DNA of 64,000 nt from Trichosphaerium sp. ATCC 40318. Its lineage: Eukaryota > Protista > Tubulinea. Positions 13,069 through 23,193 of this stretch are shown here, one piece after another. Every line of letters starts with the position of its first letter. Within the stretch, counting starts at the first letter, position 1. Made by a program: the position numbers and the translations under genes. Where the stretch lies: contig JALMLS010000100.1 in assembly GCA_038496445.1 (NCBI GenBank), positions 124,001 through 188,000 of the forward strand, given 5' to 3'. The notes under the pieces are model-generated. The model saw only the letters and a list, made by a program, of their open reading frames with translations, was not told the origin of the DNA and did no database searches.

Positions 13069-14320
13069 ATGATTCCTAACTCATATTCAAGCACTTTACT
13101 TGATATACCAGTTGAATTGATGATAATTATATGTGAATTGGATAAGGATATTTACATAAAATGGCCTCTTATTTGTCGAGAAATGGCATTCGCTTCACGC
13201 TTTAATACATCATTTTGTAAGTCTGGAAAATGGTTAACTTGGTATTGTGGTGATCATTCTGATCAGATTTTTGAAGAATCTTTCTTTGTTGACGGTGTGA
13301 GGCAAGGTAGGAACAGACAGTGGCATGAAAATGGACAACTTTTTATTGTCCGAAATTTTGAGGATGGATTAGCTGAGGGTACTTGTAAAACGTGGTGGAT
13401 GAATGGTAAGAAGCATGTAGAATCTACTATGAAGAGGGGAAAGGTTGATGGGATTAATAATCAGTGGGGTGTTGATGGTAAACTGTACATGACTGGATTT
13501 TATAAAAATGACAAGCTTGACGGTAAATTCAAGAAATACGACGCTGTCAGTGGTACGTATTTCCATCGGAGTTTTTTTTATATGAAAAACACCGTGCCTT
13601 TTATAATTCTATAAGCGCAGTACGTCATAAATTTTGAAAACGAAGAAATTTTTACATTTTTGATTGTCATTCGAGTTAAATCACGTGATGACTTGAAACC
13701 AAAAAAGCAAGAAAACTGAGTGAAAACTTAGCCACATATTTACCGTAACTGATACGCGGAATAGTGTGAAAAGACTGATCACACGTGGCTTTTCTGTAAC
13801 ACAAATTATCTAAAAGTAAATCCATTTTAATTTTACATACAAAACGTCTGAGTCACTTTTGGGCCTATCTTATCTGCAAAATGTAATTTTTTGTTAGTAA
13901 CTAATTGATCGATTTCTAGGATTATTATTAGAAACAGGATGCTATGTAAAAGGTAAATTGGATGGCGTTTATAGAAAGTATTTTAATTCTTTGGAACTTG
14001 ACCAATATTTTGATTCATTGGACGAAGAATCTCAACAACAATATATTGAAAACCATCCTAAAGGTAAACATCAATTACATTATGAGTGTTTCTTTAAAAA
14101 AGGGAAAAAAAATGGAAAGTATAAAGAGTATTATGTAAATGGACAAGTACAAAATGTATCAAATTATACACGTGATAAACTTCACGGTGAACATAAGAAT
14201 TGGTATTTCAATGGTCAAATAAGTTGTACTTATGTCTATAAACATGGAGAGCTTTGTGGTACTCACAAAGAGTGGCATCAAAATGGTACTGTAAAGAAAC
14301 ACTACCAACATGGTTGGTAA
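13069..14320 (+). CDS. F-box-like + MORN-variant repeat protein, paralog 2
   Basis: LLDIPVELMIII...WPLICR followed by MORN_2 repeats (QWHENGQL, YYVNGQVQ). An intron at 13553-13919 joins the two ORFs in frame. Confidence 0.82.
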
Positions 14321-14630
14321 ATATGTTATCTATCAGGCTCTTCAAAATAAATAACACCAATTTTATCTGTGATGTTCACTTCATCGTAACTCACAACAAA
14401 ATCATCAAATTGTTTCGTCAAATGGCAGTCAGGCTTCTGTCTTTGTGTGAATGAATCTAGCTAACAACTATGCTATGAGGAAATCAAAGTTAGTGATTCA
14501 CACGTAGTCTCAGATTTGTTTTTACTGGTCCTTAAACAAAGAACCTTATCGTGATTATTTGGAGTACAGCAGCATTTATTTAAGATAATGTACAGCATTG
14601 CAAAGAAGGGAGTGCTCCAAAGAAAAATGA

Positions 14631-17600
14631 TCATACTTGTTCCAATTCATGCATTGAAAAATTTTCTGTACTATCAGTGACGACAATATCAACAAAAGCT
14701 TCACTACCTGGATTAGCATTAGTATTGACCAATAGCACATTGAAAAAAAAAATGGTTCAAAATATAAAACTGTCTTGAGTCATACCTGCGTCCATAACAT
14801 CACGATGTTCTGCGTTCCTACCTGTCAATCTTCTTGTAACATTTGAAAACTGCTTCGCCAAGCCTATTGTAGTACATGTTAACACAAAGAATAGGGAAAA
14901 GTGGTGTGTAGAAGGCAGTGCTATAGTAATAAAAAAACAACACGTACGTCTGTCAAACACAGGAGCATCAAATAGTTTTATTGTTGGTGGGTTTTTTGTC
15001 ACTTTTTCTTTGAAATCACACCAATCGGGTTGAACATATTTTTTAGCAAACTCATCCAGATCAACAGAAGGTGGACGTGTTCTGTATAAAAATATGAGTC
15101 CGAAAAAGAAAATACAGGTTCAACGATTTGCTTGCTTACCTTGGATAGTGAGCTACTGTACCATGCTTAGAAACAGACCAATATTTACGTTCTGTTATGA
15201 CCCAGAAAGCCAGTGTGATTGGAATCAAAGAGAGTACTGCAATCGCTCCTTTTATAAACAGTTAGGTTTTTTGATTTTCAGAAAGAGAAAAATATTGTCG
15301 TTGTCCAACATACCTCCTTCTACGAAAGAAATAAACAGAATTCCAGCGATAGTGAGATGATATAATATAAGGCCGACCATTAAGTACCGGAAAAAATAGA
15401 ACCAATGCACACCACCTAAGACAAAACAATTAGCACCAACATAGTATTGTTTTTTTTTAATATACCTCCTTCATACTCTGCTTTGCGGACATATATTGTA
15501 TTGTATAGTGATTCCAAGTAAGCAAATAAGAAGTACATACCACCAAAAGGAAGTATAAGTGGAGCCATAGTTGAGTACGAAATCACAATGAGTAAAATTA
15601 ACATGTGCCTCGAAGCCCAGTAATCATACTGATATTGTTTCGCACTAATCAACACAATCATTAGGTTAAAATACAAAAATGATACTACTTGGAGTAAAGG
15701 ACAATTTTGTAATCAAGAAGGGAGGTTACGTACCGGTCAAAAAACTCTAGTTGACGTCTTGTTTTTACCCAAAAATATTTGACAAGAATTCGAATGAACA
15801 GACCTGGCGCACGCCATAGATGCATTGCACTTCCAATGAAACTCGATACCATAACGTAATTTATGAAGAAAGATTGTTGTGAAGGTATAGCAGTTGCAAG
15901 AACAACAAAGATACGCTCTGGACGTGATGCAATGGCATCTAAAAAAAAGTCAAAATACAATACAGATACAAACAAATGTTAGAGTTAGCTACCCACCTAA
16001 CTAACTCACAGAAGCGCAAATATTACTTTGTGTACAATATTATAAAAATTTATGTTCATAAAAAATACAAAGGACGTACTTATGACTTGCAAAACAGACC
16101 CGGCAATGATCTAATTATTTTGTTAAGGCAAAGATAGATATCAAAAAAAAAGTAAACTTCGATATTTCTCTTACCTGAAACAACCATACATTAAACATGA
16201 GGAATAAAACATACTTTGTCATAACAGATGATGTTTGTTCGGACTACAAAAACAAAAAATCAGTTCATCAGGAAAGAGCGAGGTTTCTTCTTTTTTTTTT
16301 TCTGGATTTTTTTTCTTCACGAAGAAAAAATAACTTACCCTTGATGTAAAACCATTGAATACTGATATCAATCTTAATAGGTTTACCATGAACTTTGTAA
16401 ATATATACAAAATCAAAGAAGGTACAACACCTTGAATAAACCATCTCAATATAGTATAAGAGTGGATAATCTTTGAAACAAATCCATATTTTTGTGGAAG
16501 AGCATCTAATATTTCCAAGCTTGAAATAGAAGCGACTATCACGTGATATTAATCGTTTATGATTTACTAATATACATATTATACGTACCTATAAGACTCA
16601 CTGGACTAGCTAAGAAAAGTACTAGTACAAGTGTTATAGCCCACGTGATGATACGTCTCAAAACAAACGATGTTTGAGTAACATACATGTTTTTCCACAT
16701 GATAGCTCTAGAGAAAATAACACGTGTAAGTAGTAGGGCGGGTACACTATGAAAACGGAGGTTGTACTTTGAGTCAGGTGCTATTGAAATCTTCCAGCGT
16801 GCGTTTATATTACTCTGAGATGCAAGCATTGCATCACTGATAGTCTTGAAAGTGACAAAAGCAGTGCCTGTAAAAAACAATCAATCGAACTAATGGCATG
16901 CTCGTTAACGAGCTCTATCTCAGGTATTTCGTATCAAATTACTTACCTGCGTAAGGAGCGCTCTTTGGGTCGTATTTTCTATGTTCTGCTTGAATCTCTG
17001 CTTCAATATCAGCAAGCTGATGCCGATAGTATTTTATTGAATCTCTTTCTTTTCCACAACATGTATAGTCCTTATGTGTAGGTCTTATCCCGTTCTTCTT
17101 ACGGTACACATACGCCTGAAAACATACATAAGAAACTGCACAAACAAGCATGCCAGTATTTCAGAAGCAATAGTCTAGTAGTTCTTGGAAAAAAAAGATG
17201 AACAACCAGTACCTTTTCTAGATTGTTGATGATACTCAATCGTTCTTCGTACTTTTTGTTTATTTCTGGTGTTGATTTAACCCGAGAAACAGAATGTACA
17301 GCGTCTCCTGTAAAATAATTTAAGTAAGTTAACTCTACAATACATAATAATAACTTGATGCTTACCATAGTACAACCGAAACAACTTGCTAAGCTTACGT
17401 TTATCAAGACTTATGTCATCAGTTGATACAGGTCCTGAAGCAAGAACCCATGGAGGTAGTTCTGTATCTGACTCGGAATCACTATGATTCTCGCTGCTCT
17501 TCAAAGCTACAGTGAACTTGTTAGTACAACAAAGACAATCAAATCAAAACAGAAAAAAGAAGGAAAAACAGGTACCTTGCAATGTTATTTTTTTTGACAT

Positions 17601-20175
17601 ATCAGAAGCTCTTCGAATTGTAGTATCATCGTCATTCTCTGTAGCAGGTACTTGTACATCCACAGGTAAGAAAGAAGCAAAGAAGTGTAATGTAGATGTT
17701 GATAAATTAGAGACCATGATAGTGTAGTTATGTGGTTTATGTAGTTCCTTATATTTGCATCGCATGCTGTAAAACTATAATCATAAGTTAGAATTTTTTT
17801 GGTTTCACTTAGGTTGTCGTTGTACGTCTGCGTAAAAGTTCCATAGTACGTAGTACGTAACAAATGTATTATAGAATACACCAAGAACATGGAATACAAA
17901 GTACAGCGAGTTAGGATCGCGATTAGCCATTGACCTAAAACAACAATGAGTTTGCCTTTAAATCCCAGCCGTAAAAGGTAGAAATATTAATCTTACATTA
18001 CATCTAGCCCTGATACATGCAGTGGATGTTCTCTGGGTAAATTCTTATTACCTCCAGTAACTAAAGAGAAACATAAGATGTAGTGTTTTGATGTGTTGTA
18101 CCATTGACAGGAAGAAGAACAAATAGTCCATAGATTGAGTAAAGTCCAACAAGTTTTAAAGCCAGTCTTATAAATCGAAGGAATAGCAATCTGTAAGAGA
18201 CAAGTTGTTAATCAAGATACTAAAACTACTCAAAATTATTCGCACGAGTCTGCTCCATGAGATAAAAGAAGGTCAGCGTCTGGAATACGAATCATATCGA
18301 TAAACCATTTAATAAGGCCTGGTGATGGACTTTTAGGTGCTAGTGGATCTAGACTGTAGCACAAGTATGGTCAGTATGGGATATTTTGTGTGGATATATT
18401 TAATGTATAACGTACACTCCACTAGTGTTTGGCTGCGATCTAGGTTCGTAGAAATATTGAAACCTTTTACGAAATAATAAAAATCCCATAAAGATTAGTA
18501 TGCCAACACCCAAGTTTATGCTGAATGAAATAAAGAATCCTTCAATTGACGCTGGGACTATACTACTTGTGGCATTAAAAACATAAACCTAAATTGATAA
18601 AGGTGAGAATGAGGACAACAAAAAGAAAGTCAATCGAAAATCAAAACACGAATTTTTGTCAACAAATGTCAGAATTAGTTGGTTTGCTAAGCAACTATTA
18701 TAAGTAGAAGATCGTACTTCATTAGTCAAAGAGTCGCCAACAATTGTGAGATTTTGATTGTAGTTAAAATCAATACCAACCGGTTTATTGAAGCTTCCAA
18801 ATCGCTGATACACCAACCCTAGTATAAAAGTAAATAAATGTATTTTATCAAAGTATTGTACCATCAAGGGTAAACCGGCTAACTGATTTCTCTCTCCAAT
18901 CAGTGACGAACTGTAGTGTGTTTAATAACACTATTACACGCTGTTACAACGTACCACTTCTTGAAGTTGATCAGTAAAAGTTATGTACCTGCAAGTAATA
19001 AATACGCATTTGGATAAACTCGCTTGTGTTTGCACAAGTTAGACATTTAACACTTACATTGGTATCCAATCATCCTTTGGTCTAGAGGAACTAATAAATG
19101 TCCCTAATATTCATTGTTAGAAGCAAGAATACTCGCATACACACTCAACCATTTGTAAAAAAGTAGTTCAATCTAGTGTTTCCATGATCAACAGCGACAA
19201 TTCTATCTTCTTGTCTTGGGTTTAAAGCTATACTAAGAGCCCCATCGAATTCACCTTCTCCTGTACCATGAGTTCCAAAAACAGTAATAACTTGGCCTAA
19301 ATCTGTTACCAACAAACATCTCCAAAAGAAGTCAATAAAAAAGTAGTAAGATACCATCATTTTGAGATATACTTTGTATCCTATCGTTCCCTGTGTCTGC
19401 AACAAAGAACGTATCATTTATAGAAGATACAGCTACATCCTGCGGAAGAACAAATTGACCAGGTAGTACACCAAGGGATCCATAGTTTCGCGAGAATATC
19501 CAATCTGTTCCGTTGAACGAAAAAATAGAAATACGATGATTCCCTACGCGCTTTAGGTCATTCTGACACGTGCTTTATAAAATTACTAACCTGAATCAGC
19601 TACATAAACGTCATAACCGACAGAGTCTCCAGATAGACCTACATAATCATTTAAAAACGAATTAACGTCAAAAACGTAATACGTATTTGTTGTAAAAAGT
19701 GCGTTGGTTACCTTTAGGTGCTTTAAGTTGCCCGTCAGCTGAACCCACCTCACCAAACATGGTGTAGAACGTGCCTTGGCTAATTTAGAAATAGAAAAAA
19801 GCCTGAATAGTACCATTTGTGTAAAACACTTGCACACGATGATTGGACGTATCACATACGCCGATAAACGTAGTATTGGGAGTGTAGAGATAAGCTACTC
19901 CGAAAGGACCATCAAACTGCCCTAAATAACTTGTAAGCCGTATTTACGCGTCAACAGCGCTGTAACCCAAGTGGGCACATACATGTCGCTGTCATTGATA
20001 AAAATCAGTAGTATGTTACTCAACGCACCTGGATCTACCCCATAAGTACCAATGGATACCTCCCTTCGTTCTAAAACACAATTAGCTTCGTTATTATTAG
20101 GATTGCCTACTAACCTCCTCCGGCGCGGCAAAACGCTAAAAACAGAGCCACACACAGAAGTGCTGTAGTGTTCAT
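14631..20175 (-). CDS. Signal peptide + NHL-repeat beta-propeller fused to an OSCA/TMEM63/CSC1 (DUF221) mechanosensitive channel
   Basis: Signal peptide MNTTALLCVALFLAFCRA. NHL blades GQFDGPFGVA, GQLKAPKG..VYVADSGNHRISIF, GEGEFDGALSIA..VAVDHGNTRL and FNKPVGID..VGDSLTNEVYVF. Channel motifs LFRKRFQYFYEPR, TGTAFVTF, APD..IMWKNM, FFINYV and YSTMAPLILPFG. Confidence 0.85.
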
Positions 20176-20387
20176 GACATCCGTTTTTTGGTTTTGACTT
20201 AACCAGTCAAATTGCGTACGTCGACGTTATAACTACAAGCTGTCTCAATTGTTGGTATGAGTACCAACACTCCAAGTTGTTTGGCTTTTGTTTAGCTAAT
20301 CTTGGTAGTTTGTAGCGGCAATGACACGTGACAAAAAAGTAAACCATCAAGAGGGAAACATGTAAAGTGAACTTAACCTCTTTTTTA

Positions 20388-23193
20388 TTAAGGATCCTTT
20401 TCAAGTAGTATTTTCTCTTCGTCGTCTACTGTGACATTGGTATCTACATCCAAAATACTAGTCAAATCTTTTGGTTTCCAAACAAAGACGATTACTAAAC
20501 AAGCAAGAAAAGACCAAGAAAAACAAATCATCAAGTTTGTAAAAGCCCAAACAGGAAATCCAAGTACTATTTCATCCATTTCTCCAGGTCTTCTAAAGAA
20601 ACCACATGAAAGCATAGTAAGTATCAAAATACAAAATAATAGCCATGTATGCTCAACAGGATCTTTATAAATGCCTAAAACCTCTAAGTCAGTACAAAGT
20701 TGTTTAGATTAAAAACCAGACCACCATAAAACGTGGTCTTCAACATCACCTTTGACTCCTTCATGTAATTCAAATTTATATCTTCTAACTGTTTTAATCA
20801 AGTACTCTAAGATAAAATGCGTTGCAAGCAGAACTAGAATAAGACTTTAGCAAGAAAGAAACACAAAAAACTTAAGAACATACCAACTATGTTCGCTACA
20901 ATACCAAAGAAAGCAACATTCAATCCACCTGTTTGTAGTGGTTAATTCTGGACTGTATTAAAACGATTCATACCGGGCGCGGGTGCAAAGATATGCATAG
21001 TTACAGATACTACCTGGCCAACTATAAACCCTGCCAATACCGCTTCATACCTAATAAAAAATGTAAGAACAGAAGTTGAATTGCCATTACGCACCTCAGA
21101 GATATCCAGTATGCACCAAGCAAATACGCAGGTAGGCACTGAAGTAATATAGCGCTCTGAAGTACATATAGTGATTTTATATCGAATACTATTAAAGTGC
21201 CAAAGACAACACCAATACCAACAAGAAGTACAGTAATAACTTGGGAAATAATTAACAAAGTTCGTTGAGCAAACCTAATTCCTCATTTTAGTACACTGCT
21301 ATAACCAATATAATACGTACATTGTTTGTCGGAATGGAGCGATTAAATCAAGAGCTATGACACTAGCGCAGCCCATCAAGAGTGAGTCCGTTGTACTCAT
21401 TCTAGTTTTTGTGAAAATTAGTGAGTTTTCTGTTTAAATAGATGTTACATTGCGGCTACTGTACTGGCGACTAGCATGGTAGCTATAGCGTAAGAAAATC
21501 CTCCAATTTCAAGCAAATCGCTATACAGCTCTGTATTAGTTATGGGTGTAGAAAGCAAAAGGGTAAATCCATGCCTTGTAATGATAGAAAACATTTGGTC
21601 GCTGTCTTCATCAGAAACATTTGGATGCCTTACTTTGCCTAAAGAACATCAGCAATGCATTCTCAGGTGAGTATGGAATTTACCTATCAACCCTGTTGCG
21701 ATTGTGGGTATATACGCTAAAAATGTTGCCCAGAACATAAACCCAACACCAATCCTGAACTTCTTTTCATTTTGTACGGCAAACACACGTTGCATTATAT
21801 GAGGATAGCAAGGGAACCTACAAAACAGAACGCTTCACAAATTGAACAAGGTATATAAGGCTTACGCAAGACCAAGCATAGCGAACGTCAGGAAAGCCAA
21901 CTTTTCTTCTGCTGGAGGTACAATCAGCATTGCTCTGGGTAGGTCTTTGGCCAGCTTTATCAATCCTCAGACAGAAGTTAGAAAACTCCTTCTAATTTGT
22001 AAGCACCTTCAAACTCTACGACACCAACACCGACAAGGGATAAGAATGCAAAAACAAGTAGGACTCCTTGTATGGCGTCATTCCAAGCAACAGATCTCAT
22101 GCCTCCCTGATTTCTAACTTAAGCTCCGACTTTCAATTGAAAAATAGTCTCCTTACCAAAGCCTCGTAGATTAGCATCACTACACCCAGGGCCACAGCAC
22201 CTAAAAGTGGGTATCAACTTACTTGTGTGTCAAGTTCCACTCACCCCATACTGCCGGAATAGAACCATTGGAAACACCCTAAATTGTGGTTAGAATTTCA
22301 ATTACACTTGGATTAGCATACCACAGCAGACTGTCCAATAGCTTTAAATTGGCCTATGATATAAAACATACTTCCAACTACTGTTGCGATACTCACCAGT
22401 ACCCGCAGTAACTTTGAGCTATAAATAAAAGTAAATCACGTGGGTTTGGAACAAAAAAACTAAGAAGTTCATTTGTGTACTCGTAGCGATGTTGTACAAA
22501 CTCATTTGGCGATACGTAACTAGTATAATGTAAGTCAAGTAGTGCAGGTGTTAAGTTCGTGAAGATTACCTGTGAATCTTTGCAAGACGATGAAATCTTG
22601 GACCAATAAGAACCATTGATGTAAATATCATTTGCATACTATTTCATAACAACATAAACAATTCCTCCAAAGCACTCTGATAGAATGACATACCTAGCAA
22701 CCCACATAAGAGATTGATATCCCGTCCTATAAGCATCTCCTGTAACACCAACTATCGTGTATCCAGAAAACGCCTAAAAAAGTTGACAACTTACAAAAAA
22801 ACCTTACAAAAATTGTCAAAGTTGTTGTACCGACGCAAACATTGTCAAAAAGAATATCGTAACTCCAAGAGATCCTCCTGCCTAATTCGAAAGTTCAAAA
22901 TAATTTTGTTTAAACGGATAAAACAGTATTATGCCATAGAACCGTTTTATTAGTTTCGTAGACGCTATTTTTGTACCAGGTAATGATCAGCTGTAAATTA
23001 TAAGTTTGTAGAAGAAATATTTATTTTGAACATACCCATAGTCCTTTCTCCACGCTTTAAAAACCTAACAAAGCGTCAGAAAAGTTTAGACAGTTTTTTG
23101 TAGTTGGACTTTGTACCCTAAAGCGCCAAGGCCCAATAAACCGAGTATATACACTGCCAAAACTATCCATACAGCAACGCCGTGGTCAGCCAT
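20388..23193 (-). CDS. Sodium:solute symporter (SSF/SLC5) family transporter
   Basis: Motifs LAGGSLG..LTM, FSGYT, GFPCYPHIMQRVFA and AAMSTTDSLL-like (across a splice), with multiple TM segments in many short exons. Confidence 0.85.

Follow-up and report, generated by a model that had tools for sequence, protein, structure and literature searches.

An NHL beta-propeller and an OSCA/TMEM63 channel encoded by one transcribed gene in the amoeba Trichosphaerium sp. ATCC 40318

Channels of the OSCA/TMEM63/CSC1 family are explained by force-from-lipid gating, essentially without an ectodomain (PMC13494684). A locus in the marine amoeba Trichosphaerium sp. ATCC 40318 raises the question whether a member of this family can carry a large folded domain outside the membrane, or whether two separate genes have been read as one. 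The locus lies on the reverse strand of a 64,000-nucleotide stretch (GenBank assembly GCA_038496445.1, contig JALMLS010000100.1, positions 124,001 to 188,000; hereafter the window, to which all coordinates refer). A first-pass annotation, made from the letters alone, had proposed that NHL repeats behind a signal peptide are joined there by one intron to an OSCA/TMEM63 channel. Our analysis shows that one gene encodes one polypeptide of 1144 amino acids, in which a putative signal peptide, a predicted six-bladed NHL propeller, a linker of 9 residues, the membrane helix M0 and a complete OSCA/TMEM63 channel follow one another. The fusion is real, and it is transcribed.

The gene model (hereafter NHL-OSCA) was stitched from reading frames and from joints observed in RNA. 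Its frame runs unbroken through 32 exons, and the final base of the stop codon is position 14631, the same end as in the first-pass annotation. All 31 introns have GT-AG borders and are short (39-141 nt, median 62), and the stretch from 20175 to 14631 has the look of an intron-rich eukaryotic gene. Both this structure and the G+C content of the window (37.9%) fit the figures published for the Trichosphaerium draft genome (PMC10521059), in which G+C amounts to 37.69% and introns and exons average 75 nt and 154 nt, respectively. No second copy of the gene was found within the 64-kb window.

At the joint between the propeller and the channel, the intron that had been proposed (18589-18717, phase 0, GTACG...TTTAG) proved exact to the base, and the protein across it reads ...SLTNE|VYVFNATSS.... 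The evidence from RNA consists of parts of the locus that occur as contigs in two public sequencing runs (X1 and X2) from two studies; since these contigs lack introns precisely at GT-AG borders, they are derived from RNA. Contigs from both runs carry the exact splice (joint 18586->18716, cut +2), which was the check that the first-pass annotation had called for. In X1, the joint has a depth of 5.4 and a shorter side of 61 letters, and the sequence is identical to the genome, while in X2 the depth is 4.7 and the shorter side 21 letters, with 4 differences in 165. The remaining features of the joint agree with a single gene, as had been argued. The NHL frame contains no stop ahead of the donor site, and the intron interrupts the final strand (E|VYVFN) of blade 6, so that the channel exon supplies the VYVFN strand that completes the blade. 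The first Met of this exon is residue 330, which lies within M0, and the channel could therefore not be translated separately with an intact M0.

Splicing elsewhere in the gene was assessed from the same material. Altogether, 15 joints are listed in the RNA, each of which equals an intron of the model after the stated cut shift, and introns 17775-17825 and 17308-17365 are backed by the ends of RNA pieces together with a loose end. The splicing of the last 15 introns is confirmed by a transcriptome peptide of the same strain (P0001; MMETSP0405, CAMPEP_0168534012, 621 aa), which matches one 67-aa exon at 100% and is equal to model residues 497-1144, except for the substitution R587W and one 27-aa gap that falls within a single exon. 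For the 5' part, an X2 contig (record 8, 19813-19920) bears extra letters on both sides, as if exons 2, 3 and 4 had been spliced together.

Some features of the RNA data deserve separate mention. The gap in P0001 corresponds to 81 nt of the genome (16396-16476, reverse strand, in exon 16339-16535). A short CAAAG repeat flanks these 81 nt, and GT-AG ends are absent in every register; without the 27 residues, one membrane helix would be largely lost. The gap resembles an artefact of assembly or reverse transcription, or a rare aberrant isoform, more than an intron. Another X2 contig (19922-20057) holds the unspliced intron 2 (19922-20028) and part of exon 2, with adapter sequence located precisely at the intron's 3' end. 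Its origin could be unspliced pre-mRNA, a fragment derived from the intron or carried-over DNA. Finally, 15 of the 22 X2 contigs on the gene (14600-20250) show just 90-95% identity. This points to paralogues that are expressed, or else to a strain or species that is related and has the same gene.

The channel part is a member of the OSCA/TMEM63 family on every feature of sequence and fold that was tested, with 11 predicted membrane helices. Pfam profiles for RSN1_TM and NHL were scored exon by exon on the model, and the E-values for PHM7_cyt and RSN1_7TM refer to P0001. The RSN1_TM profile (PF13967) is matched in successive exons at profile positions 2-36 (27.9 bits, cut-off 27), 44-74 and 77-111, beginning at residue 18 of the junction exon. 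PHM7_cyt (PF14703) was found with an E-value of 2.2e-22 (80.5 bits, cut-off 27) and RSN1_7TM (PF02714) with 2.6e-46 (158.7 bits), the exon matches of the latter spanning profile positions 17-247. Compared with PDB sequences, P0001 matches OSCA1.2 and OSCA3.1 with E-values of about 5e-36, and TMEM63A and TMEM63B with about 1e-16 to 1e-17. Most of the helices M0-M10 appear as hydropathy peaks; M2, M6 and M8 fall under the cut-off and were positioned by eye.

An AlphaFold2 model of P0001, which lacks M0-M2, reached a mean predicted local distance difference test (pLDDT) score of 70.7 and a predicted template modelling (TM) score of 0.69. All of its top 36 Foldseek matches in the PDB are OSCA/TMEM63 structures, the best being OSCA3.1 (E 8.9e-19, TM score 0.66). 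The PHM7 region is modelled as a mixed alpha/beta domain with high pLDDT, and from model residue 520 onward the pLDDT is mostly below 50. Profiles, PDB sequence matches and predicted fold thus concur with the family assignment given in the first-pass annotation.

At the other end of the protein, the ATG at 20175 opens a hydrophobic, signal-like N-terminus (Kyte-Doolittle value 1.54 for residues 1-19), as had been described, with a putative cleavage site at ...FCRA|GG. The NHL repeats that follow had been counted as about five or six. The predicted propeller stands, and mutual alignment of the repeats settles the count at six, with the consensus ...G.F..P.G[ILV]a......i.VaD..N.R[IV]..F...G and with blades 5 and 6 degenerate. 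Two exons reach the Pfam NHL cut-off of 20 bits, with 21.5-24.3 bits. In a search of PDB sequences, the 62-aa exon 19356-19541 matches the NHL domain of TRIM71 over three stretches (E 6.6e-20), and matches the propellers of teneurin, PknD and PAM more weakly (E 4e-8 to 2e-3). An enzymatic propeller resembling the PAM lyase was considered and rejected, as the PAM match is weak (E 0.002 compared with 6.6e-20 for TRIM71).

Four introns of the propeller (19775-19813, 19297-19354, 19104-19149 and 18819-18861) are in phase 1 and lie at the same repeat position in four blades, where they interrupt the Gly codon of a ..N/D-G| turn; one of them is just 39 nt long. This shared position fits duplication of blades at the level of exons. 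Phase 1 is found in 8 of the 11 first introns, which cover the signal peptide and NHL part, compared with 10 of the 20 later ones. An argument for exon shuffling from intron phase was dropped, since the later introns are also often in phase 1.

Several features bear on the side of the membrane on which the propeller is located. No Lys or Arg occurs in the 15 residues preceding M0, while three occur in the 15 that follow, where the sequence reads KRFQYFYEPR; this bias fits an N-out orientation according to the positive-inside rule. Together with the topology of the family and the putative signal peptide ahead of the propeller, it points to a propeller on the extracellular or the equivalent luminal face, and these features agree with the outside N-terminus given in the first-pass annotation. 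The ectodomain contains 7 N-x-S/T sequons, where 3.0 are expected from shuffled sequences (P about 0.02). The glycosylation proposed from such sequons accordingly gains an excess in its favour, and the support that this lends to a glycosylated ectodomain is modest. The linker between propeller and M0 comprises residues 306-314 only, so that the propeller would have to lie directly against the outside of the membrane domain, beside M0. The coordinates of all parts are collected in Table 1.

Table 1. Parts of the Trichosphaerium NHL-OSCA gene and of its product, in coordinates of the window.
Feature	Position	Strand	Details
Whole gene	14631..20175	(-)	32 coding exons, 31 GT-AG introns; coding sequence 3435 nt with stop; 1144 aa
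Putative signal peptide	20119..20175	(-)	Residues 1-19; exon 1 = 20115-20175; core ALLCVALFLAF, small residues before GG
Six-bladed NHL beta-propeller (predicted)	18562..20056	(-)	Residues 26-305, exons 2-12; six repeats align with NHL consensus
Junction intron	18589..18717	(-)	129 nt, phase 0, GTACGA...AATTTAG; between blade 6 and M0 exon
Junction exon	18416..18588	(-)	Last strand of blade 6 (VYVFN), 9-residue linker, M0 (residues 315-336), FYEPR motif
RSN1_TM region (M0-M2)	17847..18537	(-)	Residues 314-470; three consecutive exons match RSN1_TM; hydropathy peaks
Cytosolic M2-M3 loop	16656..17846	(-)	Residues 471-729 (259 residues); PHM7_cyt at 577-718 and acidic/Ser-rich insert
RSN1_7TM pore region (M3-M10)	15193..16655	(-)	Residues 730-1031; Pfam, PDB sequence, Foldseek
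Cytosolic C-terminal tail and stop	14631..15192	(-)	Residues 1032-1144 (113 residues)

How far does this protein depart from known members of the family? With canonical channels of known structure (AtOSCA1.2, 6mgv; AtOSCA3.1, 8xw0; hTMEM63A, 8ehw), it shares the order RSN1_TM, PHM7_cyt, RSN1_7TM, the predicted fold, the 11 membrane helices and an N-terminus that lies ahead of M0, at 21-24% identity to the solved structures. The difference lies before M0, where the count is a few to about 90 residues in known members and 313 here, including the putative signal peptide and the six-bladed propeller. The sole described precedent that we found for an ectodomain at the same position is the N-terminal domain of hTMEM63A, which is much smaller, is not a repeat propeller and has no proposed binding function. 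To our knowledge, it also has no signal peptide. This soluble domain extends from M0 and covers the pore region from the extracellular side (PMC10319725), and the authors of that study suggest that it may contribute to the smaller conductance of the channel (PMC10319725).

Six-bladed NHL propellers on the outer or luminal side of a membrane protein are likewise found in the sensor of Mycobacterium tuberculosis PknD (1rwi), in teneurins and in the PAM lyase, but in these cases the attached part is a kinase, adhesion protein or enzyme and not an ion channel. The closest match in sequence is to the TRIM-NHL proteins (TRIM71/LIN-41, Thin, TRIM2/3, Brat), whose NHL domains are cytosolic, bind RNA or protein and stand at the C-terminus of RING/B-box proteins. 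The Trichosphaerium propeller, in contrast, is N-terminal, follows a putative signal peptide and carries seven sequons.

We then asked whether the same architecture occurs elsewhere. The queries of this survey were single exons and P0001 rather than the spliced full-length protein, and the negative results are limited accordingly. In BLASTP comparisons with 47 retrieved homologues, model residues 1-300 did not align with any of them, and in full-length relatives residue 5-18 pairs with model residue 303-313. Seven long OSCA relatives (979-1309 aa) have an RSN1_TM match that begins at residue 3-89, their additional length being located in the cytosolic loop or the tail. Homologue searches with P0001 (6 matches) and with a profile of four sequences (lengths 417-1326 aa; 24 matches) returned only plain OSCA proteins, none with the NHL domain PF01436, which is a weak negative given the coarse word prefilter of these searches. 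The 57-aa junction exon yielded no candidates in a homologue search, and a whole-library HMMER search with one 67-aa exon gave 17 matches, including P0001. Searches of the ESM Atlas by features and by fold retrieved only ordinary OSCA clusters, again none with PF01436. Of two metagenome scans, one was empty and the other gave a single 5'-truncated OSCA-like contig (L001), which is uninformative on N-termini.

The nearest amoebozoan relative (31% identity) comes from Soliformovum irregulare (EukProt) and is known from the peptides of three isoforms (P0023, P0004 and P0024). Each of these begins at an internal Met just ahead of M1, so that M0 is missing. The nearest relative with a complete N-terminus (P0012, 29% identity) has about 40 residues before M0. 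A literature search found no paper that pairs NHL with OSCA/TMEM63 or with mechanosensitive channels, and the Trichosphaerium genome paper does not mention NHL, OSCA or a channel (PMC10521059). The remark in the first-pass annotation that characterised members do not show this architecture is thus borne out among the retrieved homologues, the Atlas clusters and the literature, and as far as this limited survey reaches, the NHL ectodomain appears to be new for the family.

As to the role of the propeller, the explanation that we favour, and hold to be fairly probable, is that of a fused NHL-OSCA channel whose outward-facing propeller is a binding module that couples or tunes the channel. The channel core would still answer membrane tension or osmotic stress, like its relatives, and the propeller would be a protein- or glycan-binding module coupling the channel to an external partner, with the cell coat or test, the substrate, prey or a soluble ligand as candidates. 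The propeller may tune M0 and the outer pore vestibule or transmit force to them. A tethered or ligand-binding receptor-channel had already been named as a possibility in the first-pass annotation. The existence of NHL ectodomains elsewhere, with PknD, teneurins and PAM among the PDB matches, is in favour of this explanation. Several observations weigh against it. In the accepted view, members of the family are gated by force from lipid and not by a tether (review PMC13494684), and the propeller may consequently be unrelated to gating. The best PDB matches of the blades are cytosolic TRIM-NHL domains, and apart from the signal peptide the ectodomain has a single Cys and hence no disulfides; both points speak mildly against a classical ectodomain. 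The channel itself is divergent, with 23-35% identity to any retrieved relative. In addition, exons 5-9 (18947-19702) are covered by no RNA contig in X1 or X2, nor was a full-length mRNA found in one piece in these runs; the link from the putative signal peptide and blades 1-2 to blades 5-6 is drawn from the open frame and from the completeness of the propeller.

The thin 5' coverage and the lack of a single RNA contig over the whole gene might indicate an artefact, in which a secreted NHL gene and an OSCA gene were joined by read-through or by chimeric contigs, or a decaying pseudogene. We regard this as very improbable, as the junction is a canonical GT-AG splice seen in two studies, the NHL frame is free of stops up to the donor with blade 6 finished by the next exon, the channel exon has no Met ahead of M0, and no frame break occurs over 32 exons. 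NHL propellers typically use their top face to bind partners, as is known from the TRIM-NHL, PknD and teneurin families, and a repeat propeller of 280 residues would be a costly shield. Both considerations make it quite unlikely that the propeller is a passive structural cap without an external ligand, which would shield the outer pore, lower conductance or serve assembly or trafficking. Such a cap would agree with the 9-residue linker, which forces tight contact with the membrane domain, and with the N-terminal domain of hTMEM63A, which shields the pore and may reduce conductance (PMC10319725). Alternatively, the same protein could reside in an internal membrane, such as that of the lysosome or phagosome, the contractile vacuole or the Golgi, with the propeller in the lumen, where it would bind the contents or glycoproteins. 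In topology the luminal face is equal to the extracellular one, the sequence features do not tell them apart, and the endomembrane system of a phagotrophic amoeba is large; moreover, lysosomal roles of TMEM63 channels are described in a 2026 review (PMC13494684). We consider such a location possible, though unlikely. Returning to the outward-facing binding module, its most far-reaching form would be that Trichosphaerium possesses, in its NHL-OSCA genes, a small family of receptor-channels, whose propellers, each with its own specificity, bind coat or test, substrate, prey glycans or a soluble cue and gate or strongly tune the pore through the 9-residue link. We put this forward tentatively, as an idea that is more doubtful than the coupling or tuning role as such.

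The surroundings of the gene add the following observations. A gene for a membrane protein lies upstream in the same orientation and ends at 20388, leaving 213 nt of intergenic sequence (20176-20388) before the ATG; the start codon at 20175 is overlapped by an upstream open reading frame of 2 codons (ATG TCA TGA). The other strand carries, immediately downstream of the gene, an open frame (13958-14320, forward strand) with MORN_2 repeats (PF07661, E 3.3e-7). Neither tRNAs nor tandem repeats were found near the gene.

If the receptor-channel reading is true, this protein would be the first OSCA/TMEM63 channel whose control comes from beyond the bilayer, by way of a tether or ligand, and not from lipid tension alone, and such an externally coupled member would be of interest precisely in view of the force-from-lipid account of the family. 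As a naturally occurring channel whose large propeller, of the binding type, stands about 9 residues above M0, it lends itself to a test of gating or tuning from the outside with a pair consisting of the full-length and the propeller-deleted protein. Should the propeller turn out to be only a passive cap, the protein would still show the effect on conductance of an ectodomain at the position of the TMEM63A N-terminal domain. For the amoeba itself, NHL-OSCA is a candidate sensory receptor.

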